A DNA stretch of 64,000 nt from Okamejei kenojei (lineage: Eukaryota): NCBI GenBank assembly GCA_035221665.1, contig CM069156.1, positions 36,022,001 to 36,086,000 of the forward strand, read 5' to 3'. The translations under genes and the position numbers were made by a program. The notes under the pieces are model-generated. The model saw only the letters and a program-made list of their open reading frames with translations. It had not been told where the DNA came from and did not search any database. This document shows positions 7,242 to 64,000 of the stretch, in pieces; the stretch's first letter is position 1; each line of letters begins with the position of its first letter.

Positions 7242-7389
7242 NNNNNNNNNNNNNNNNNNNNNNNNNNNNNNNNNNNNNNNNNNNNNNNNNNNNNNNNNNN
7301 NNNNNNNNNNNNNNNNNNNNNNNNNNNNNNNNNNNNNNNNNNNNNNNNNNNNNNNNNNNNNNNNNNNNNNNNNNNNNNNNNNNNNNNNN
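7242..7389. other. Assembly gap (148 N) within a CT-rich microsatellite
   Basis: Run of N. Confidence 0.99.
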
Positions 7390-12607: not shown

Positions 12608-15166
12608 CACAGACACCACCATCATTGAGAGTCACTGCTCAGCCAACCTTGAGTTCCTCTTGGTTAAATGCAGACCGTTCTATCTGTCCAGAGAGTTTAC
12701 CTCCACTGTTGTGACTGCAGCCTGTATCCCTCCTGATGCTAATGCCAAGCTTGCAATGAAAGAACTGCATATTGCCATTAGCAAACAACTGACCCTCAAT
12801 CCAGACGCAGCCTTCATTGTTGCGGGTGACTTCAATCACTCCAACCTGAAGACTGTACTCCCCAAATTCCACCAACATGTCTCCTTTGCCACTAGAGAGG
12901 ACAAGACACTGGACAAAGTCTACACCAACATGGCTGAAGCGTACAAAGCCATCCCCCTCCCCCACCTTGGTCAGTCTGATCACTTATCATTGTTCCTGCT
13001 CCCTAAGTACTCCCCACTCATCAGACGCGTTAAACCCACAGTGAGGACAGTCAAGGTTTGGTCAGATGAAGCGGACTCCACACTCCAGCAGCGTTTTGGT
13101 AACACTGACTGGGATGCATTTGCAGCTCAGGCCACCCTTGACTCCCACACTGACATTGACGCCTATACTTCCTCTGTTCTGGACTTCATCAACTCCTCCA
13201 TCAACAGTGTCACCACTCTCAAACAAATCACCACATACCTGAATCAGAAACCATGGATGAACAGCGAGGTCAGGCGACTGCTGAAAGCACGGGACTCGGC
13301 TTTCGGGTCAGGCGATGCCCGTGCCTATAGTTCATCGAGGGTCAATCTGAAGAGGGGCATCAAGAACGGCAAACACAGATACAAGCTGCGGATCGAGGAG
13401 CACTTCGACAGCAACTCCGACCCCCGACGCATGTGGCATGGCATCCAGGCCATCACTGACTACAGAGCCACCAACTCCACCCCCACTTCCAGCGACGCAT
13501 CCTTCCTCGAGGAACTCAATCACTTTTATGGCCACTTTGAAAGGGACAACCAAGAGTTGGCCATCAAGGCTGTGCTCCCCGATGGCCACCAGCCCCTCAC
13601 ACTCAGTAGTGGCACTGAGTAGGATCAATGTACGTAAGGCTGCCGGCCCTGACGGCATCCCCGGGCGTGTCCTCAGGACCTGTGCTGCACAGCTGACAGA
13701 CGTCTGGACTGACATCTTCAACCTGTCACTTGCCCAGGCAGTTGTCCCCACGTGCCTTAAAACTACCTCCATCGTGCCGGTGCCAAAACACTCCACTGCA
13801 GCGAGCCTCAACGACTTTTGCCCAGTTGCACTCACCCCTATCATCGCCAAGTGCTTTGAAAGGCTGGTCATGGCACACCTCAAATACTGCCTACCTCCCA
13901 CTCTGGACCCCTACCAGTTTGCATACCGCAAGAACAGGAGCACGGAGGATGCATCTCAACGGCACTCCACCCCGCCGTCTCCCACCTCGACAACAGAAAC
14001 ACTTATGTGAGAATGCTGTTCATCGACTACAGCTCAGCATTCAACACCATTATCCCCTCAAAATTGATCGCCAAACTCGATGACCTGGGCATCAACCCCT
14101 CCCTCTGCAATTGGTTACTGGACTTTGTAACCAACAGACCACAGTCTGTTAGGTTGGATAACCACTCCTCTCCTACGCTCACCCCGAACACTGGCGTACC
14201 CCAGGGCTGCGCGCTGAGCCCCCTCCTCTACTCCCTCTTCACCTACGACTGCATACCTGTACATGGTACCAACACCATCATCAAGTATGCAGATGACACG
14301 ACGGTGATTGGCCTCATCAGCGACAACGATGAGTCGGCCTACAGGGAGGAGGTTCAGCTCCTAACAGCATGGTGTGCCGACAATAACCTGGCCCTCAACT
14401 CCAAGAAGACCAAGGAGCTCATTGTGGACTTCAGGAGATCGAGAGGCTGCACGCACAACCCCATCCATATCAACGGGACAGAGGTGGAACGTGTCTCCAG
14501 CTTCAGGTTCCTGGGGGTCAACATCTCCGATGACCTCTCCTGGACCCACAAACACATCCTCGCTGATCAAGAAGGCTCACCAGCGTCTCTTCTTCCTGAG
14601 GAGACTTAAGAAGGTCCACCTGTCTCCCCAGATTCTGGTGAACTTCTACCGCTGCACCATCGAGAGCATCCTTACCAACTGCATCACAGTATGGTTTGGT
14701 AACTGCTCTGTCGCCGACCGGAAAGCTCTGCAGAGGGTGGTGAAGATCGCCCAACGCATCACAGGCTCCTCACTCCCCTCCATTGAGTCTGTCCATAGTA
14801 AACGATGCCTGCGCAGGGCGCACAGCATCGCCAGGGACAGCTCACACCCCAACCATAGACTGTTTACCCTCCTCCCATCCGGGAGACGCTACAGGTCCCT
14901 CCGCTGCCGGACCAGCAGGCTCAAGAACAGCTTCTTCCCTGCGGCTGTCACACTTCTCAACGCTGCACCTCAATGACTGCCTGTCTCCACCCCTCACCCC
15001 ACCCCGGACTATCCAATCACCAGCACATTGCACGGACACCACTGCACTTGTATATGTATTACTTGTTTATTCGTAAGCTCGCCCTTCGGAGAGACCAACT
15101 GCATTTCCTTGTCTCTGTATTGTACACTGCACAATGACAATTAAAGATTGAATTGAATTGAATTGA
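12608..15166 (+). mobile_element. 5'-truncated Rex1/Babar-clade non-LTR retrotransposon (APE C-terminal part plus RT, a few frameshifts)
   Basis: Motifs [47 protein letters not shown] and YADD across ORFs 12585-14976. (AATTG)n tail. Splits a minus-strand V-SINE. Confidence 0.9.
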
Positions 15167-30296: not shown

Positions 30297-32704
30297 CGAC
30301 AAACGCCTCATAAACAGAGCTAGTGGAGGTTCTACAATGAGTGCTGGAGTCAACCAGAGGGAAGATGATTGTATAATCCTCCCGTTAGTCAACCGCGGTG
30401 ACAACACTGCTAGTTTAGCCTAGTTTACAGATACAGGCCCTTCGGCCCACCGAGTCCGTGCCGACCAGCGATGCCCGCACACTAACACTACCCTACACAC
30501 ACACACACTAGGGACAAGTTACATTTATACCAAAGCCAATTAACGCTCAAACCTGCACGTCTTTGGAGTGCGGGAGGAAACCGGAGCAGCCGGGGAAAAC
30601 CCACGCAGGTCACGGGGAGAACGTACAAACTCCACACAGTCAGCACCCGTACGTCAGGATCGAACCGGCGTCTCTGGCGCTGTGAGGCAGCAACTCTACC
30701 GCCACACCACCGTCCCGCTAGAATTAATCAAGTCCGGTTTAATGCCCTAAATAGTTTAGTTTAGAAATATAGCACAGAAACAGGCTCTTCGGCCCAATGA
30801 GTCCGTGCCGACCACTGATCATCCATTCGCTCTAGTTCTATGTTATCCCACTTTCTCATCCACTCCCTGCACCCATCTTTAGAAAGGAGATGAGGAGGAA
30901 TTTCTTCAGTCAGAGGGTGGTGAATCTGTGGACCTCCAGGTTCAGGAGCTGCTTCTTCCCAACCTCTGGGCTCTGCAACAATACAAACTAAACTACGAAC
31001 TAGGAACGGTTTTGTGTCTAGGGGGAACTGCAGACGCTGGTTAATACTGAAGATAAGACACAAAGTGCTGGAGTAACTCAGTGGGTCACGCAGCATCTCT
31101 GGAGAAAAAGGATAGGTGACGAGCGTTTGACGTTTGACGGCACTGGGCCTGTATTCGCTGGAGTTTAGAAGAATGAGGAGGGGAACTTCATTAAAACTTA
31201 CCAAAGAGTAAAAAGCATGGATAGAGTGGATGCGGAGAGGATGTTCCCACTAGTGGGGGAGTCTAGGACCAGAGGCCACAGCTTCAGTATAAAAGGATGT
31301 ACCTTTAGAAAGGAGATGAGGAGGAATTTCTTTAGAGGGTGCTGAATTCATTGCCAGATGCTGAGGAGGCCTTTGGTTGTTTTTACAGCGGAGATGGACA
31401 GTTTCTTGATTAGTGCGGGCATGAAAGGTTATGAGGAAAAGTCAGAGAACGGGGTTGAGAGGGAGAGATAGATCAGCCATGATTGAATGGTGGAGTAGAC
31501 TCGACGGGCCAAATGGACTAATTCTGCTCCCATGACATGAACTTTCACACAAGGGCCAATTTTATGGAGGCCCAATTAAACCTACAAACCCGCATGTCTT
31601 TGGGATGTGGGAGGAAACCGGAGCACCCGGAGGAAACCCACGCGGTCACAGGGAGAACGCACAAACTCCACACAGAGAGCACCCGAGGACGGGATCGAAC
31701 CCGGGTCCCTGGAGCTGTGAGGCAGCGGCTCTACCAGCCGCCCCATTGATGGTTGCCATGGTTTCCATGCTGTATCTCCAAACTAAAGAGCTGACTTGTT
31801 AAAGCAGTGTGTGTCAACAGTAAAACGTTTAATAAATCAATTGTCCCGAGTGACCAGGATTCTCAAACTCAAATCAAAAGAGGTCACATCATAACAAAGT
31901 AACCACAGACCGCCAGTGTTTGTGCCACGGGCTGTGTAACCAGACGCTGGCAGCACACCAAGCAGAACACAGCAAAAGGCACAAATCTGAAATTAAAAAA
32001 CGGAAAATACTGGAAACACTCAGCAGGCCAGGCAGCTTCTGTGGAGAGAAAAGAAGTTCATCTACCAGAGATAGACACAAAGCGCTGGAGTAACAGCAGG
32101 ACAGGCAGAATCCCTGGAGAGAAGGTACAGGCGACGTTTCAGGTCGAGGCCCTTCTTCACACCGAGAGTCAGGGGAGACGGAGACACAGAGTTATGGAAG
32201 GGTAAGGTGTGAAAACGAGAGATCAAAGGGGGTTAAGATCAAGGAACATGTAGAATAGATCATTGTTAGCTCAGGGAAGGTGACAGATGTTCATTCTGTT
32301 CCTGTGTTGAGGCCTGCAGAGATCATATTGAACAGGGCAGGCCTGGGAGGTCTGCCGGCCTCCTCCTGTGTCCGTGTCTCCTCTCCATTTTGCTTCATCA
32401 CCTGCTGACTATTTCCATCCACATCAGAGAGTGATACGCCATGGAAATAGGCCATTCAGCCCAACTTGTCCATGCTGACGAAGATGCCCCTTCTACTCCA
32501 GTCCCACCGTTGGCCCAGATCCCTCTAAACCTTTCCTCTCCGTGTACCTGTCCAGGTGTCTCTTCTGTTGTTATAGTACCTGCCTCAACTTCCTTCTCTA
32601 ACTTCAAGTAGCTCTTGCAACCCTCTCTCTCCGTACCCCCCCCCCCCCCCCCGTCCCCCGTCCCCCAAGTCATCGTACCAGTTTCAATGTTGTCTTGTTG
32701 AGTC

Positions 32705-37024: not shown

Positions 37025-37331
37025 AGTTTAGTTTAGTTTAGTTTAGAGATACAGCGTGGAAACAGGCCCTTCGGCCCACCGAGTCCGTGCCGACCAGCGA
37101 CCCCCGCACCCTAACACTATCCTCCTCACTGGGCACAATTTACAATTTTCACTGAAGCCAATTAACCAACAGGCCTGTACGTCTTGGAGTGTGGGAGGAA
37201 AGCGGAGCATCCGGAGAAAACCCACGCGGGCACAGGGAGGACGTACAAACTCCGTACAGACAGCGCCCGTAGTCAGGATCGAACCCGGGTCTCTGGCGCT
37301 GCGAGGCCGCAACTCTACCGCTGCGCCACCG
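37025..37331 (-). mobile_element. Near full-length V-SINE (HE1-like), representative minus-strand copy
   Basis: Reverse complement of the same head, V-domain and (CTAAA)n tail. Confidence 0.85.
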
Positions 37332-39366: not shown

Positions 39367-39693
39367 CTTGCACTGTCACATGGACGTAGCGTTTGATTGT
39401 CTTCTCCAAGCCGACGTGGTCAACGTGACAAATGAACGTGGCGTCGTTGTCCTCGAGGGAGGCGGTGAAGCGGAAGGAACTGGTCACGTTGAAGGTGCCG
39501 TCCCTGTTCAGCCCGTGTGGGGAGAGGACGGTGTTTTTCAGGTAGTGGGGCAGGAGGTGCTCTCCGCCCTTCCGCCTCTGCCAGCGCACCGCCACGTCCA
39601 GCGGGTAGTACCGCTCCGCGCTGCACGCCAGCTTCTGCTCGTCGCCCTCCCTCAACGAGAGCGAGCTGTGGCTCAGGGACACTGTGGGCGCCT
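39367..39693 (-). CDS. Tapasin-family gene exon 5: Ig C1 domain (KLACSAERYYPLDVAVRW...NRDGTFNVTS...FICHVDH)
   Basis: 327 nt, phase 1/1. YYPLDV, DGTF and C-x-V-x-H C1-set motifs. Confidence 0.93.
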
Positions 39694-49242: not shown

Positions 49243-50038
49243 CTGCAGAGGTGGAAAGTATTCAACAAAGGGAATGTTTTTTAACAACGCATTTATTTAA
49301 ACAGCGCCACTTCATTGAGAATAGATGCATTTGAACAAGATATCTATAAACAAATGTCTATACGTCTATAAACAAGAATGTAGACACAAGAATGCTGGAC
49401 TAACTCAGCGGGTCAGGCAGCATCTCTGGAGAAAAGGAAAAGGTGACGTTTCGGTTCGAGACCCTTCTTCGGACAACCCGAAAGGGTTAGGAGATGTGGG
49501 GGGCAGGTGTGTTTTACACAGAGGGTGGTGGGTGCCTGGAACGAGTTGCCGGGGTGGTGGTGAGCCGGATACTTTTGGATAGGCCCATGGGCGTGTAGAG
49601 GGTGGAGGGGCATGGATTGTGTGCAGGCAGAGTAGAGTTGGTCTTGGCATCTTGTTGGGCACAGACAGTATGGGCCGAAGGGCCTGTTCCTGTGCTGTAC
49701 TGTTGTATGCTCTATGGTCCCAAAGAAGCAGCTCACGCCCCTGCTTTGGGATATTGTTGCTGAGGTTGAATTTATAACGACTAAACTGGGCATTCGGCTT
49801 GCTGGGGGTCCAATGAGAATGGGATGTGTGGGCAGGAACTGCAGATGCTGCTTTAAGCCGAAGATAGACACAAAACGCTGGAGTAACTCGGCGGGTCAGG
49901 CAGCATCTCTGGAGACAAGGGGTGGGTGACGGGGTCGAGTGCCTTCTTCAGACACGGGCTCTAAAAGCAACACTTTGCGTGCCAAGGACACGTAGGTGGG
50001 ACAGGCCCGCGGCGCGGTGCGAATCGGGGTGGTCTTAC

Positions 50039-50120
50039 CAGCGGAGACCATGCAGAGGAGCAGAGCCAACATGCGTGGAGATAGACCCGGAGCCGCCGGT
50101 CTCAGCCCAAGGACAGACAT
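50039..50120 (-). CDS. Tapasin-family gene exon 1: signal peptide (MSVLGLRPAAPGLSPRMLALLLCMVSAG)
   Basis: ATG at 50120, with an alternative in-frame ATG at 50072. Hydrophobic core and |gtaag donor in phase 1. Confidence 0.75.
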
Positions 50121-50240
50121 TTCACTTTCGATTTCTCGAATCCTACGCGGTAGCTTCCGGGATCCAGCATCTAATGTAAGGAAGATTGGTTTGGAGATTG
50201 TAACCGTGTAAGCAGGGGCAGGACAAGGGCAGGTGGGCGG
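50120..50240 (-). promoter_or_regulatory. Proximal promoter of the tapasin-family gene: tandem ISRE/IRF-E, ETS site, CCAAT box, GC box
   Basis: The minus strand reads GAAATCGAAAGTGAAA (50135-50120), CCGGAAGC (50160-50153) and CCAAT (50189-50185). GGGCGG lies at 50235-50240. Confidence 0.6.
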
Positions 50241-51190
50241 AGAGGGTGGTGAGGTGAGGGGATGGGGGAGAGGGGGTGGGAGGGGATGGGGGGAGATGGG
50301 AGGGGAGAGAGGGAGGGAGATGGGGGGAGAGGGGATGGGAGGGGGAGGGATGGGGGGGATGGGGGGGAGAGGGGATGGGAGGAGAGGGGGGGGAGGGGAT
50401 GGGGGGAGAGGGATGGGGAGGAGGGGGAACGGGGAGGAGGATGGGAGGATGGATGGATGGGGGGGAGGGGATGGGGGGGAGAGGGGGGGGGGAGGGGATG
50501 GGGAGAGGGGATGGGGGAGAGGGGATGGGGAGGAGAGGGGATTTGGGGGGAGAGGGGATGGGGGGAGATGGGGGAGGGGGGAATGGGGGGGGAGTGATGA
50601 TGGGACGGGGAGGGGGGGATGAGGGGGTGGGAGAGGGGGGTAGGAGGAGATGGGGGATTGGAGGGGGGAGAGGGGATGGGGAGGGAGAGGGATGGGGGGA
50701 GAGTATGGGGGGGAAAGGGGAATGGGGAGGGAGGGGAGGGGAATTGGGGGAGAGGGGATGGGGGGAGAGGGGATATTGGGGATGATGGGGGAGGAGGGGG
50801 AAGGCGAGGGGATGGGGGGAGAGGGATGGGGGATAGGGAGGGAAGGGAGGGGATGGGTGGAGAAGGGTTGATGGGGGGAGAGGGATGGGTGGATAGAGAG
50901 GGATGGGTGAGAGGGGTGGGGAGGAGGCTGGGCGTAGGTGATGGAGGGTGGATGGGAGAGAGGGTGGGGAGGCTCACAGCGTAAGTTCAGAGGTGGATGC
51001 GTATGGGGGGAGAGGGTGATGGTAGAGATGTGGATGGGGATGGGAGGGGATGGGGAGGAGAGGAAGATGTGGGTTGGGGAGAGGGATGAGAGTAGGGGCA
51101 TAGGATGAGGATGCGGTGATTGTGCAGAGGGGAGGTCGTTGGGAGGGGATGGCGAGGAGAGGTATCATAGGGAGGAAGAGGGATTTTGGA
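50241..51190. repeat. G-rich polypurine low-complexity tract (GGGGAGAGGGGAT-like units) upstream of the tapasin-family gene
   Basis: Visible composition. Confidence 0.9.
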
Positions 51191-52200: not shown

Positions 52201-52792
52201 GTCGCGTAATCCTCTGATAAGTTGCATGATACCCCTACATTCGTGCATTATTCCATTCTAAATACGGAGATGGGAAACCTGTGTACCCCAGGTTCGGACA
52301 ACGACCGTGTAGTCCACACCCCGCTCTCTTTCAATATCTTCGGCGCCAATGACAAGGTTACTATCCTTACAAGCACATAGCAACGGTGGACCAGGAACGG
52401 AAGGGCCAAAAGGCCACCCCATGGGGCAGTAAGTAGCTGCCTCACCGCGCAGAGACCCCGGTAACGAACCGACTACGGGAGCTGTCTGTAATGTAGTTTG
52501 TACTTTCCCCTGTCCCCGCGTGGTTTTTCACCGTGTGCTCCAGTTTCGCATCCACACTCAAAGACATACAGGTTTTGTAGGTGAATTGGCTTGGTATCAT
52601 TGTAAAAGGTGGAAAAACAAATGGTTCCGCACGACTGGAAGGGTCGAGAGGGCCTGTTCCGTGCTGTAATATGTTATATGGTTATATCTGGATATATGGT
52701 TTGTGTAGCAGCTTAGCGTTAGTGTGCATGGATCCTGGTCGGCGCGGACACTGGTTTCCGCGCCTATAGTGTCTAAACAAAACTAACAATTT

Positions 52793-52930
52793 CTGGTGGG
52801 ATAGTGCAACCTTCGCTGGTCCGCCCTTTTACGACTGAATGCAATCAACCTGGCGAGTGCACAAATCAAAATAAGATCAAATAGTTGTTCCTACAACTTC
52901 TGACTGTGCACCCATACGCAAGAATAGAAG
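52793..52930 (+). mobile_element. Second, degraded copy of the ribozyme-headed short retroelement
   Basis: ggtgggatagtgcaaccttcgctggtccgccct...gaatgcaatc...aagatcaaatag...ctgtgcacccatacgcaagaatagaag aligns end-to-end with 63672-63802. Confidence 0.65.
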
Positions 52931-53751
52931 CTATACTCTTATATTAATTTCTATTTCCAGAATATACTTTATTCATAGAAAATATGAACAGGAAATGCAA
53001 GGCAATTGGAATAGGGGGGGAATATATGTATATTTTTCACTTTTTGCATCTTTCATTCATTTGTACCATATCTCTCTGTACTGTCCATATCTCTCGTTTT
53101 CCCTCTCCCCCGACTCTCAGTCTGAAGAAGGGTCTCGACCTGAAACGTCACCTGTTCCTTTTCTCCAGAGATGCTGCCTGACCCGCTGCGTTGCTTTAAC
53201 TTTGATGGCCAGTACAGTGCAGGGATGAAGGGTCTGTTTCCATGCTGTGTGATAATTAAACGTACAATTGATTATTTGCAGAAATGAGCCTGGGACTGCT
53301 GGTAATGCTTATATTATACCAAACGTGTAACATATATGAAAGAGCAGCACGGAAACAGGTCCTTCAGCCCTTCAAGTCCACTGCAAGCATTGATCACCCG
53401 TTCACACTGGTTCCATGTCACCCACTTCCTCATCCATTCCCTACACACACTAGGGGCAATTTACAGAAGCCAATTAATCTACAAAGCCGCACGTCTTTGG
53501 GATGTGGGAGGAAACCGGAGCAGCCGGAGGAAACCCAGGTGGTCACAGGGAGAACGTGCAAACTTCCTCACAGACGGTGTCGGAGGTCGGGATCGAACCC
53601 GGTTCTCTGGCACTGTGAGGTATCGGCTCTCCCAGCTGCGCCACTCTGCCACCTAGCCCATGGTTACGCGCCGTTTTCCACATTATGATGAACTATGGTG
53701 ATATGGCAATGCTGTGAAATATTATTGGATTGTTCCAATTATGGAGTTGTT

Positions 53752-59533: not shown

Positions 59534-60899
59534 CTGGTAATCAAAGGAATTTTGTTTTATTAGAGGAAAGCGATCGTTAAAACCTTACACTGAATTAAAG
59601 CCTCTTGAGGGCGCACAGTAGCGCAGCTGGTAGAGCTGCTGCCTCACAGTATCAGGGACCCGGACTCGATCCTGACCTCATGTGTTGTCAGTGTGGAGTT
59701 TGCACATTCTACCTGACCGCATGGGTGCTCCGGTTTCCTCCTACATCCCAAAGATTTGCTGGTTTGTCGGTTATTTGGCTCTGTAAATTGCCCTAGAGTG
59801 TAGGGAGTGGATGAGGCTATGGGACAACATAGAACTGCAGTTCCTTGTTTCTACATAGTCAAGTCAACTCAAGTTAATTTCATTTCTGTAGCACATTTAA
59901 AAACAACTCTCGTTGACCAAAGTGCTTTACATTAGAACTAGTGTGAATGGGTGAGCGATGGTCGGTGTGGATTCAGTGTGCCGAACATCCTGTTTCCATG
60001 CTGCATCTCTAAACTAAACTACCTTACCCTATCTGTGTACCAGAGACAATATCTGCTTATAAGCCAGATAACATACTAGGGTCCCTAGTATCGTGGTAAA
60101 GAGACATGGAAACAAAACACACCAACATACAGCTTCTTCTTTCAGTTGCAAAATCAAGTGCCAAGACATTTTATCACTCTTTTGTCACTTTCTGTGAGAG
60201 TAAAAGATATGTTATAACTAAACAATTAACAGGAGATTTTGTCGATTTGGGGATATCAGCAAATTCACATAGTTTTGAAATACATTAAAACACTCTCACA
60301 GATAATATGAATTTAATCTGACTTTATTTGGTTTTATATTGCACTAAACGGGTGAACATCAGGAACATTAGAGGAAGAGACTGACTTTGGTGCCTTCCCT
60401 CACAGTGGGAAATGTTTGATTCTGCTGTGTGGGGATATTTTATGTTGGACTCTGTCGTGTGATGTGTTCTGTATTGTATTGTATGGCTGTATGGTGACCA
60501 CATTTCACTGTGCCAACTGGTACATGTGACAAATAAATGTATCTTGTACATTATTCCCTTTACCCTCTACCTCTATACACCGTGTGACGGTTTGATTGTA
60601 ATCACGTATACTTTCCGCTGCTTAGATGTCACGCAACAAAGAAGATTTTTCACTGTTCCTCATTGAATTCTCCAATCTTAGTAAAGGGCCTGTCCCACTT
60701 TCACGACCTAATTCACGGCCTTTTTTACTCGTGGACAATTTTCATCAGGCTAGAAAAACGCCCCGACCTACTTGATGCCACGAGTACCAACGACTAGCAT
60801 CACGGCCTGCTATGACCTACCTACGACCTCGTGACGGCCATGCAGCGAGTATGAGTCAAGGGCAAACAACAAACCCCAGCAGAGGTCATGAATTAGGCA

Positions 60900-61565
60900 A
60901 CCCACCCAAAAACACCCACCCCCAACCAAACCTCTCTTCGTGCCTCTCCCCCCCTCATCCTCCATCCCCCCCCCCCCAGCCCCCCCCCCTCCCCCCCCTC
61001 CCCTCCCCCCACCCCCCCCCCCCCCCCCCCCCTCAATCGTCGGACAGCTTCGCGCACCCCCAGACCTACCACCCCCCCCCCCTCTCCCCCCCCCCCCTCA
61101 CTCCCCCTCTCCTCCTCCCACCCCCCTCTACCCCACCCCCTCCCTTCCCCCCCCCCCACCTACCCCCCCCCCACGACGCCTCCGCCGCCTCCCCCCCCCC
61201 GCCCTCCACTTCCCCAACTCCCCTCACTACCCTCCCCTCCTCCTCCAACCCACCCACCTCCCCCCCCCCCCCCCCATCCCCAACCCCCCCCCTCTCCCCA
61301 AACCTCTCACCCAAAACCCCCTCCCCCCCCCAGCCCACTCCCCCCCCCCCCCCCCCCTCCCCCCCTTCGTCCCCACCTCACCCCTACCCCCCACTCCCCC
61401 CCCGCTGCACACCCCTCCCCCTCCCCCCCTGCCCCACACACCCGCCCCCCCCCCCTCCCCCCGGATGCTTCCCTCCTCCCCCCTCACCCCCCACTCCGAC
61501 CTTCCCCCGCCCACCCCCCCTCTCCCCCCCCCCCCTTCTCCCCTTCCATGCCTTTCCCCGTCCCC
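60900..61565. repeat. C-rich low-complexity tract in an EXO5 intron
   Basis: Poly-C runs. Explains the Pro-rich ORFs. Confidence 0.9.
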
Positions 61566-62877
61566 TTCCACCTGTATCCCTTCCTCTGGCTTCAGAATTT
61601 ACTTCTCTTATCTCCTTATCAGCCTTTTTGTCTTCATTTCATCTCTGGGCATTGTCCACCGATATGCCAATAAAAATGCTCCTCACCTGTATCCACCGAT
61701 CACTTACCAGACCTCATCCAGCCTCCACCTTTTTTTCTCAGCTTTCTCCCCACCCCACCCCCACAACTGCCGAAGAAGTGATCCTGACCCGAAACATCGC
61801 CTACCCATGTTCTCCAGAGATGCTGCCTGATCCGCTGAGTTGCTCCAGCACACTGTCTTTGACTTTGTAAACCAGCATTTGCGGTTGCTCGTGTCCAGTG
61901 TCCTGTGTGTATTACAGCACCGCAGTTGTGCATTTAAGACCTGATGGGTGACTTGAACCAAAAGCATTCTGACCCAGGGGAGAGGGGACTGATAAAGAAG
62001 CCACACAGCATGCACTTGGAATTTACTGTGACTCACAAAAGCTCCATGTTAGTGCTCATGAACTTGACTCTACCATAAGGTGGCACAAAATCTAACTCGG
62101 GTATGCCGACCCAATTTAAAGGAGTCTGGGGAGGACCATTTGTTTTGTTCTAAACATTAGTTTAGAGATACAGCAGAGAAACAGGCCTTTGGCCCACCGG
62201 GTCTGCGCTGACCATCGATCAGCCACTCACACTTCTTCATGTCATCTCACTTTCCCATCCACTCCCTACACACAGCAGGCAATTTTCAGCCAGTATTTGT
62301 CCATTTTTAGCTGGGGTCAAGAAAGAATTGAAAGGCACAGCATGGAAACAGGTCCTTCGGCCCACCGGGTCCATGCCGACCATCGACACTTGTTCTAAGT
62401 TAACCTACTGGTCCTCTATTCACTGGAGTTTAGAAGAATGAGGGACCTCATTGAAACCTACAGAATAATGAAAGGCATAGATACAGTGGATGTGGAAAGG
62501 ACATTTCCACTGGTGGGAGAGTCAAGGACCAAAGGTCATAGCTTCAGAATTAAAGGATGTTCTTTTAGAAAGGAGGTGAGGAGGAATGTCTTTAGTCAGA
62601 AGATAGTTAATCTGTGGATCTCATTGCCACGGAGAGCTGTGGAGAGCAAGTCAGTGGATATTTTTAAGGCAGAGATAGACAAATTCTTGATTAGAACGGG
62701 TGTCAAGGGCTACGGAGAGAAGGCAGGAAAATGGGCTTTGGAGGCAGAGATCAGCCATGATTGAATGGTGGAATAGACTCGATGGGCCGAATGGCCTAAT
62801 TGTAGCCTGTAAGCTTGTGAGCTATATGTCGGTGTAAAATGAATGTGTTTCGAATGATTCTCGCCCGACTCACTTAC

Positions 62878-63050: not shown

Positions 63051-63671
63051 CTGAAGAACACACAACCAAATCATGACATTCAGTCTGAAGAAGGGTCTCG
63101 ACCCGAAACGTTGCCTATCTCCTTCGCTCCATAGATGCTGCTGCACCCGCTGAGTTTCTCCAGCATTTTGTGTACCCTATGACATTGGCTTATCTGGTTA
63201 TCTGCCGTCCATCAATTGCCAGTTCACACTAGTTTTAGACTTCATAAGCTCATTAGTTATAGGAGCAAAGTTAGGCCATTCAGTCCATCAAGTCTTCAAG
63301 TCTACTTCGTCATTCAATCATGGCTGATCTATCTTTCCCCATTAACCCCATTCTCCTGCCTTCACCCCATAACCCCTAACATCTGTACTAATCAAGAATT
63401 TGGCAATCTCCGTCTTAAAAATATCCATTGATGGCCTCCACAGCCTTCCGTGGCAATGAATTCCACAAATTCTTCCTCATCTCCTTTCTCAAGATTAACT
63501 TCAGAGATACAGTGTGGAAACAGGCCCTTCGGCCCGCCGAATATACGCCGACCATCGATTACCTGTTCACACTAGTTTTCAACTTTAGAGATACAGCGAG
63601 GAAACAGGCCATTTGGCCCATCGAGTCCGCGCCAACCAGCGGTCACACCCGCAAACTGGCACTATCCTACA

Positions 63672-63725
63672 GGGGTGGGAGATTGCAAGCTTCACGTGGT
63701 CCACTCTGTTTTGACGAATGCAATC
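63672..63725 (+). ncRNA. Putative minimal HDV/CPEB3-like self-cleaving ribozyme
   Basis: P1 GGGGUGG/CCACUCU with a G1-U wobble. P2 GAUUGCA/UGCAAUC. P3 AGC/GGU (ACC/GGU in the other copy). L3 UUCACGU, J1/4 GU, J4/2 CGAA with the putative catalytic C at 63715. Confidence 0.65.
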
Positions 63726-63802
63726 AATCCAACTTGCACAAACAAGATCAAATAGATCAAGTTGACGTACAGCTTTAGGCTGTGCACCCGATACGCAAGA
63801 AG
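63672..63802 (+). mobile_element. Short non-autonomous retroelement with a 5' HDV-like ribozyme and ...ATACGCAAGAAG tail, inserted in a V-SINE
   Basis: Flanked by an 11-bp direct repeat ACTATCCTACA (63661-63671 and 63803-63813). A homologous copy lies at about 52793-52930. Confidence 0.75.
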
Positions 63803-64000
63803 ACTATCCTACATACTTGGTACAATTTATAATTTTTACTGAAGCCAATTAACCTACAAACCTGTACGTCTTTAGGATGTGGGAGAAAGCCGGAGCACCC
63901 GAGGAAAAGCCAAGCGGTCAGAGGGAGAGCGTAAAACTCCACACAGACAGCAGCCGAGGTCAGAATCGCACACGGGTATCTGGTGCCATGAGTCAGCAGC

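Follow-up and report, generated by a model that had tools for sequence, protein, structure and literature searches.

The minimal HDV-like ribozymes, among them drz-Mtgn-1, which is without a P4 helix, have been traced to gut phages, where they often lie beside tRNA genes and process 3′ trailers. In the CPEB3 ribozyme, the seven-membered L3 consists of U20, U21 and C22 followed by 5′-A23-C-G-U26-3′, G37 and U38 come after P1, P1.1 is made up of one G-C and one U·U pair, and a 4-nt J4/2 opens with the catalytic C, which is followed by G58 (PMC4836649; bioRxiv 2022.09.22.508989). Among the retroelements, RTE, Ingi, Vingi and R2 all have known bipartite derivatives that lack an ORF (PMC5786205, PMC3414825, PMC3383444, PMC4035085), and in R2-derived systems the folded ribozyme has been credited with protection of the RNA 5′ end (PMC13708176). 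A ribozyme-headed, bipartite non-autonomous LINE is a kind of element already established in other clades. Searching the literature full text for ribozymes in shark, skate, elasmobranch and cartilaginous fish returned nothing relevant.

Here we describe a 131-bp element at positions 63672-63802 of a 64,000-nt stretch of skate DNA (Okamejei kenojei; the whole stretch is referred to as the window). From its sequence, we consider it probable (roughly 60%) that the element belongs to a very abundant family of ORF-less, bipartite non-autonomous retroposons, in which a minimal HDV-like head would release the RNA from read-through transcripts by self-cleavage and the tail would be used by the machinery of a LINE.

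A 131-bp insertion with ends fixed to the base

Direct reading of 63500-64000 revealed an 11-bp duplication, ACTATCCTACA, at 63661-63671 and 63803-63813, both copies of which are identical and which enclose a 131-bp insert at 63672-63802, all on the forward strand. The left copy is host-repeat sequence and is continuous in seven paralogues of that repeat. When the joined flanks were used in blastn and the matches aligned, these seven paralogues were found to be uninterrupted across the insertion point, reading ...CACTATCCT(ACA)CAC..., and represent the empty site; the right copy was assigned by direct reading and by the same paralogue alignment. The bases preceding the left and right copies differ from each other, as do the bases that come after them. 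Together, the seven uninterrupted paralogues and the perfect 11-bp target-site duplication (TSD) indicate that 63672-63802 is a true insertion with its ends fixed to the base. This agrees with a preliminary description of the locus, which had reported an 11-bp TSD around a 131-bp insert and had placed G1 of the insert directly against the TSD; the left TSD ends at 63671 and the element starts at 63672.

The 3′ terminus of the insert reads ...ATACGCAAGAAG (...GATACGCAAGAAG). Retroposition hallmarks are present in the form of a TSD with an empty site, a defined 3′ tail and the lack of an ORF, and 131 bp leave no room for the reverse transcriptase and endonuclease that the element requires. Together with the family depth profile given below, these observations support the identification of 63672-63802 as a short TSD-flanked retroposon and not a randomly 5′-truncated LINE.

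The element is embedded in a SINE-like host repeat of very high abundance (...GGAAACAGGCCCTTCGGCCCACCGAGTCC...CCAATTAACCTACAAACCTG...), which occupies 63541-63671 and 63803-64000 and is partly tandem-duplicated just upstream, at 63500-63600. About 40 further fragments of this repeat were detected in the window by blastn with the joined flanks, for example at 37042-37296, 30430-30692 and 751-1024. Elsewhere in the window, two long ORFs at 60812-61870 (+) and 49896-51101 (−), of 352 and 401 aa, matched no Pfam family at E ≤ 0.01, and a run of 148 N at 7242-7389 marks an assembly gap or a masked stretch.

A predicted HDV-like fold in the 54-nt head

When numbered from G1 (63672), the first 54 nt of the element support an assignment to an HDV-like double pseudoknot without P4, whose cleavage site is predicted at nt 1. 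The 5′ strand of P1, GGGGUGG (nt 1-7, 63672-63678), with G1 directly 3′ of the predicted cleavage site, would pair with CCACUCU (nt 30-36, 63701-63707) at all seven positions; two of these pairs are wobbles in the 63672 copy (G1·U36 and G3·U34), and one is a wobble in the family majority. After the GA of J1/2 (nt 8-9, 63679-63680), the 5′ strand of P2, GAUUGCA (nt 10-16, 63681-63687), is matched by UGCAAUC (nt 48-54, 63719-63725), which closes the head; all seven pairs are Watson-Crick, and the outer pseudoknot, P1 crossing P2, is present. P3 (63688-63700) is formed by AGC (nt 17-19) and GGU (nt 27-29) around an L3 of UUCACGU (nt 20-26, 63691-63697), and makes two of three pairs, its centre being a G18·G28 mismatch. 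The GU of J1/4 (nt 37-38) and a 5-nt linker, UUUGA (nt 39-43), which takes the position of P4, occupy 63708-63714, and J4/2, CGAA (nt 44-47, 63715-63718), begins with the predicted catalytic cytosine (C63715, C44). P1.1 is possible as C22-G37 plus U21·U38. The core nucleotides G1·U36, U20, C22-G37, G25, C44 and A46-A47 are all intact in the 63672 copy. P1, J1/2, P2, P3, L3, J1/4 and J4/2 emerged from direct reading as the preliminary description had written them; both P2 strands were also returned by the descriptor described below, and the 5′ strand by the minimum free energy (MFE) fold as well.

Helix energies were −7.7 kcal/mol for P1 (−10.7 kcal/mol with the family-majority letter) and −4.8 kcal/mol for P2, and the nearest-neighbour energy of P3 is about zero in whichever register. 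The alternative register of P3, G18·U29/C19-G28/U20·G27, would consume U20. The nested MFE fold of the head favoured P1 together with a rival hairpin inside it (nt 11-15/25-29); nested folding also gave P2. The rival hairpin lies within 63682-63700, where AUUGC (nt 11-15) can pair with GUGGU (nt 25-29) in competition with P2 and P3; on this model, it could act as a folding trap or as a switch. The folding energy was no better than that of shuffled sequences (z = −1.0 for the element as a whole, +0.9 for its head), nested folding being blind to the pseudoknot. In the family majority, the linker reads UUCGA (63710-63714), which resembles the core of a Pol III B box. Together with pairing of G37-U38 to A43-C44, the same letters would permit a 2-bp hairpin with a UUCG cap, which could sequester the catalytic C.

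To quantify the fit, a purpose-written descriptor was used, which demanded a P1 of 7 bp with G·U allowed, a perfect P2 of 6-8 bp, a 3-bp P3 in which a single mispair was tolerated, a J1/2 of 0-3 nt, an L3 of 6-8 nt with U first and C at position 2 or 3, a G following P1, no more than 60 nt of linker and a J4/2 of the form C..A. Scanning both strands of the window (128 kb) gave a single match, at 63672, which bears out the HDV-descriptor scan that the preliminary description had proposed. In 12 Mb of order-1 Markov sequence, the descriptor gave 6 matches, or about 5e-7 per position; a stricter version with a CPEB3-like L3 and a short linker gave zero matches in random sequence. Decoy descriptors in which the catalytic C was exchanged for A, G or U matched equally rarely in random sequence. 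Given a random rate of about 5e-7, and given that the fit starts at the first base of an insert defined by its TSD, we conclude that the fit is not a matter of chance. Fitting a descriptor does not amount to activity, and the element fails the descriptor once the P3 mispair is disallowed.

Comparison with the HDV and CPEB3 covariance models, which had likewise been suggested, turned out negative: the HDV, CPEB3 and drz models of Rfam gave no match at E ≤ 10, and cmscan of 63400-64000, 52600-53100 and the 65-nt head at this threshold returned no ribozyme, tRNA or other relevant match. The Rfam models cannot represent the pseudoknot and expect a P4. A metagenome scan with a 22-nt head motif gave no matches.

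Family profile, second copy and alternative readings

Family depth was derived from four public runs, namely two same-species samples, one sample of another species and one putative RNA run, whose Logan contigs were mapped on 63592-63882 at a likeness of at least 80%; every public run that contains the locus is stored as such contigs, and none is registered as RNA. In one run (X1), the summed contig depth rises from 4.3 thousand at 63662-63671 to 335 thousand at 63672-63681, and each of the four runs shows a step of 64-81-fold at 63672. Some 3% of the head depth reaches 3-4 nt upstream of 63672, as expected from chance extension, and many contig pieces begin at 63672 while lying inside longer contigs. 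The 5′ boundary of the family is sharp at G1 and coincides with the predicted cleavage site, so that the piling of 5′ ends at G1 for which the preliminary description had called is seen as a step in contig depth. The putative RNA run (X20) gave the same profile as the DNA; its data are contigs, so ends are not shown by them.

Along the element, nt 1-30 have a depth of 335-532 thousand and nt 31-50 one of about 120-250 thousand; the depth is down to about 12 thousand at nt 57, amounts to 17-22 thousand in the middle and climbs to 90-310 thousand over the last ~35 nt, making head and tail about 20-30 times deeper than the middle. A drop of about 10-fold falls between 63716 and 63728. The end of the head block falls between nt 45 and nt 57, and interpolation within the bin 63722-63731 places it near nt 54-55, matching the end of P2 at nt 54; the match is approximate, with private differences clustering at 63728-63734. 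The variable middle (63726-63764) is common to only a few percent of the head-carrying depth, and the 3′ tail module (63765-63802, ending ...GUGCACCCGAUACGCAAGAAG) is conserved in the family depth and also in the second copy of the window. The deep head and tail set against the shallow middle imply two conserved modules, common to subfamilies whose middles differ. In outline, the family has a head of 54 nt, a middle that varies and, at the 3′ end, a LINE-type tail of ~35 nt ending in AAGAAG.

Four positions of the head vary appreciably within the family. At 63705, T>C in 98% of the family depth turns G3·U34 into G3-C34; at 63712, T>C in 84% changes the linker to UUCGA; at 63703, A>G in 27% replaces U5-A32 by U5·G32 and keeps the pairing; and at 63716, G>T in 18% changes CGAA to CUAA. 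Neither nt 1-31, including the P1 5′ strand at 63672-63678 and the 5′ and 3′ strands of P3, nor C63715 carries any variant at 5% or more of the family depth, from which it follows that the G18·G28 mismatch is a trait of the family and not of the 63672 copy. The preliminary description had taken the P3 mismatch for a peculiarity of the 63672 copy, but nt 18 is the same G in 95% or more of the family depth. Covariation of P1, P2 and P3, for which it had proposed a test, was not seen: among the two copies and the family variants there are no compensatory double changes, only one-sided changes at 3/34 and 5/32 that preserve pairing. The family is young and its head nearly invariant.

A contig piece from another species (organism B), lying within a 360-nt contig, matches exactly 63672-63802. 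With two copies in the 64-kb window and a head depth about one-tenth of that of the host-repeat core (depth is not equal to copy number), the family must be very large. The 63672 copy departs from the family majority at 63705, 63712, 63728, 63731, 63734, 63757, 63765, 63767 and 63772. To judge from its letters, this copy is either not a very recent insertion or a member of a minor subfamily, despite its perfect TSDs.

The second copy, at 52795-52924 (+), is decayed, with uncertain ends and 75% identity in an alignment to nt 3-130, and was the only further copy in the window found by three motif searches with up to three mismatches and by word-7 blastn. Its first two bases are CT instead of GG, and P1 retains five of seven pairs (positions 3-7). 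It also has two mispairs in P2, a U at the position of G37 and a 1-nt insertion in J4/2; with C18, its P3 is fully paired as ACC/GGU. The 5′ end of this copy is not fixable because the candidate TSDs are short and conflicting, AATTTCT (7 bp) giving a start at nt 3 and CTATA (5 bp) a start 27 nt upstream. Thus, of what had been said earlier about this copy, the paired P3 ACC/GGU stands, whereas a start at the same place is not borne out, the alignment beginning at nt 3, and P1 still pairs only in part, two of its seven pairs being lost. As support for a ribozyme the second copy was rejected, since it is decayed and shows only pairing disruptions in the helices. Its C18 hints weakly at an older lineage that may have had an intact P3. 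A match at 39393-39428, considered as a third copy, was rejected as weak and due to chance; it sits in an apparent protein-coding exon, an open stretch at 39380-39500 (−) that reads as such (...FTASLEDNDATFICHVDHVGLEKTIKRYVHVTVQ).

The sharp 5′ boundary might have a cause other than cleavage. The head could be an inactive relic of the 5′ HDV-like ribozyme of a LINE, or a P3-mismatched form that was never active, with the 5′ end being set by another feature, such as a Pr77-like internal Pol II-type promoter or the transcription start of master loci. We regard this reading as unlikely, although it would suit the family-wide G18·G28 mismatch, a P3 that adds no stability, and the older second copy with its paired ACC/GGU, which looks as if the pairing had been lost later; moreover, the same 77 nt act as promoter and ribozyme in L1Tc and NARTc (PMC3383444). 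On the other hand, the head block has been kept across subfamilies with different middles, which points to continuing selection, and the family-majority letters improve P1 rather than degrade it. The intact core of the 63672 copy, with no family variant at 5% or more at the nucleotides checked, also argues against a relic.

It is improbable that the family consists of ordinary Pol III SINEs, in which a small-RNA gene, degenerate or unrecognised, would have supplied the head, transcription would start at G1 and the HDV-like fit would be coincidental. Conserved promoter-bearing heads with uniform 5′ ends would give an equal depth profile, and the GGGG... start, the B-box-like TTCGA (6/9) of the majority at nt 39-43 and the lack of TTTT in the majority are all compatible with such an origin. 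However, ARAGORN found no tRNA in the element, and no similarity to tRNA, 5S, 7SL or snRNA was returned by ARAGORN or by Rfam at E ≤ 10. Box matching by eye gave only 4/9 for the A box, besides the 6/9 for the B box, in a spacing and order unlike those of a tRNA, in keeping with the earlier statement that the element is without tRNA A/B boxes. A Pol III origin would further have to leave to chance a double-pseudoknot fit from nt 1 (about 5e-7) plus 7+2 core nucleotides identical to those of CPEB3. As for a randomly 5′-truncated LINE 3′ end with a coincidentally ribozyme-like start, short LINE tails flanked by TSDs occur commonly and the one here is LINE-like, yet we give this reading almost no credence, for it is contradicted by a family depth that steps up 64-81-fold at nt 1, peaks in the first 30 nt, is ~30 times lower in the middle and is high again in the tail, and by the full-length piece with the same two ends in another species.

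A self-cleaving head, the reading that we prefer, would explain why nt 1 falls exactly on the predicted cleavage site, why a head of ~54 nt is conserved and why this head is unlike any Pol III gene. A source copy would be transcribed within a longer host transcript, by presumed read-through; the head would then fold as a P1/P2 plus P3/P1.1 double pseudoknot and cut immediately 5′ of G1, and the released RNA would have the first base of the element as its own first base. By analogy with R2-derived systems, the compact fold of the head may protect the 5′ end of this RNA. The tail would be bound by the reverse transcriptase of a partner LINE, and the RNA copied into a staggered nick, giving rise to the 11-bp duplication; the tail module at 63765-63802 is presumably the recognition site of the partner.

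The search for an autonomous LINE sharing both ends, as envisaged in the preliminary description, came to nothing within the 64-kb window, which contains no LINE with the same head or the same tail and so lends no support to the Vingi/Ingi (or RTE) partner suggested there. The sole RT-bearing ORFs of the window are LINE ORF fragments at 13438-14976 (+), with an RVT_1 match at 14007-14609 (E 6.5e-21) and, downstream of it, an ORF at 14374-14976 matching Pfam ALKBH8_N (E 4.4e-16). This LINE was rejected as the partner, as there is no similarity between its 3′ region and the tail of the 63672 element.

Comparison with known ribozymes and ribozyme-headed elements

If the head cleaves, this would be a vertebrate family of SINE-like elements that lack a promoter and define their 5′ end by a ribozyme of their own, and repeat annotation would need a new class of head beside those derived from Pol III genes. 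The minimal P4-less form, so far traced to gut phages, would then occur in very many copies in the genome of a eukaryote, offering a large natural library of variants for studies of sequence and activity. It would also provide a candidate outgroup, and a testable origin, for the CPEB3 ribozyme, which is without a known non-mammalian relative (PMC8233481). If the head does not cleave, the family is merely another abundant elasmobranch retroposon, with its head unclassified.

Compared by eye, the skate element and the CPEB3 ribozyme are colinear over nt 1-38, with P1 at 1-7/30-36 including G1·U36 and P3 at 17-19/27-29. L3 (UUCACGU at 20-26) and G37-U38 are identical in sequence and in numbering, the catalytic C stands first in a 4-nt J4/2 that starts with C-G, and P1.1 would comprise one C-G and one U·U pair in both. 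The J4/2 of CPEB3 we take to be exactly CGAA, and its P3 presumably is GCG/CGC, of which G17 and C18 are attested. The CPEB3 match asserted in the preliminary description is thus borne out by published text for L3, for the GU and for the CG start of J4/2. The two differ in that the ~18-nt P4 helix-loop of CPEB3 is replaced by a 5-nt linker in the skate element, in that the P1 and P2 sequences are unrelated, and in the mismatched P3 (AGC/GGU) of the element. Furthermore, CPEB3 is a single intronic locus confined to mammals (PMC8233481), whereas the element is a dispersed, high-copy retroposon of a cartilaginous fish. It is a doubtful proposition that the head is the first CPEB3-type core to be found outside mammals and that the single-copy CPEB3 ribozyme of mammals stems from an old lineage of retroposon ribozymes in vertebrates or is a sister of that lineage; if it were true, minimal P4-less HDV-like ribozymes would be a device of eukaryotic retroelements and not only of phages.

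The likeness to drz-Mtgn-1, also parsed by eye, lies in the absence of P4 and in a J1/2 of 2 nt, a P3 of 3 nt and an L3 of 7 nt in both. The two L3 sequences are identical at six of seven positions (UUCCCGU in drz-Mtgn-1, UUCACGU in the element), 8 nt precede the catalytic C in drz-Mtgn-1 and 7 nt in the element, and J4/2, CUAA in the one and CGAA in the other, has the form C-N-A-A in both and is followed by the 3′ strand of P2. In contrast to drz-Mtgn-1 and the theta ribozymes, which occur in a phage context and have P1 and P2 of 6 bp, the element carries its fold at the head of a eukaryotic retroposon, with P1 and P2 of 7 bp and an imperfect P3.

The hammerhead and twister-variant elements of Schistosoma and the metazoan retrozymes resemble the family as short non-autonomous non-LTR elements with self-cleaving RNA processing (PMC8501958, PMC7229834). 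They differ from it in ribozyme class, and retrozymes circularise, whereas there is no sign of circular RNA here. The R2 SIDEs of Drosophila, the NARTc/RIME/SIDER elements of trypanosomatids and the RTE-derived elements share with the skate family the lack of an ORF, an HDV-like 5′ module whose cleavage site is the 5′ end, and a 3′ LINE recognition tail by which they are mobilised in trans (PMC3414825, PMC3383444, PMC4035085, PMC5786205). All these elements have known parent LINEs and ribozymes of full size, which possess P4 or large peripheral domains; R2 SIDEs, in addition, are site-specific in rDNA. The skate element, by comparison, would combine a minimal ribozyme with a dispersed distribution in a vertebrate host.
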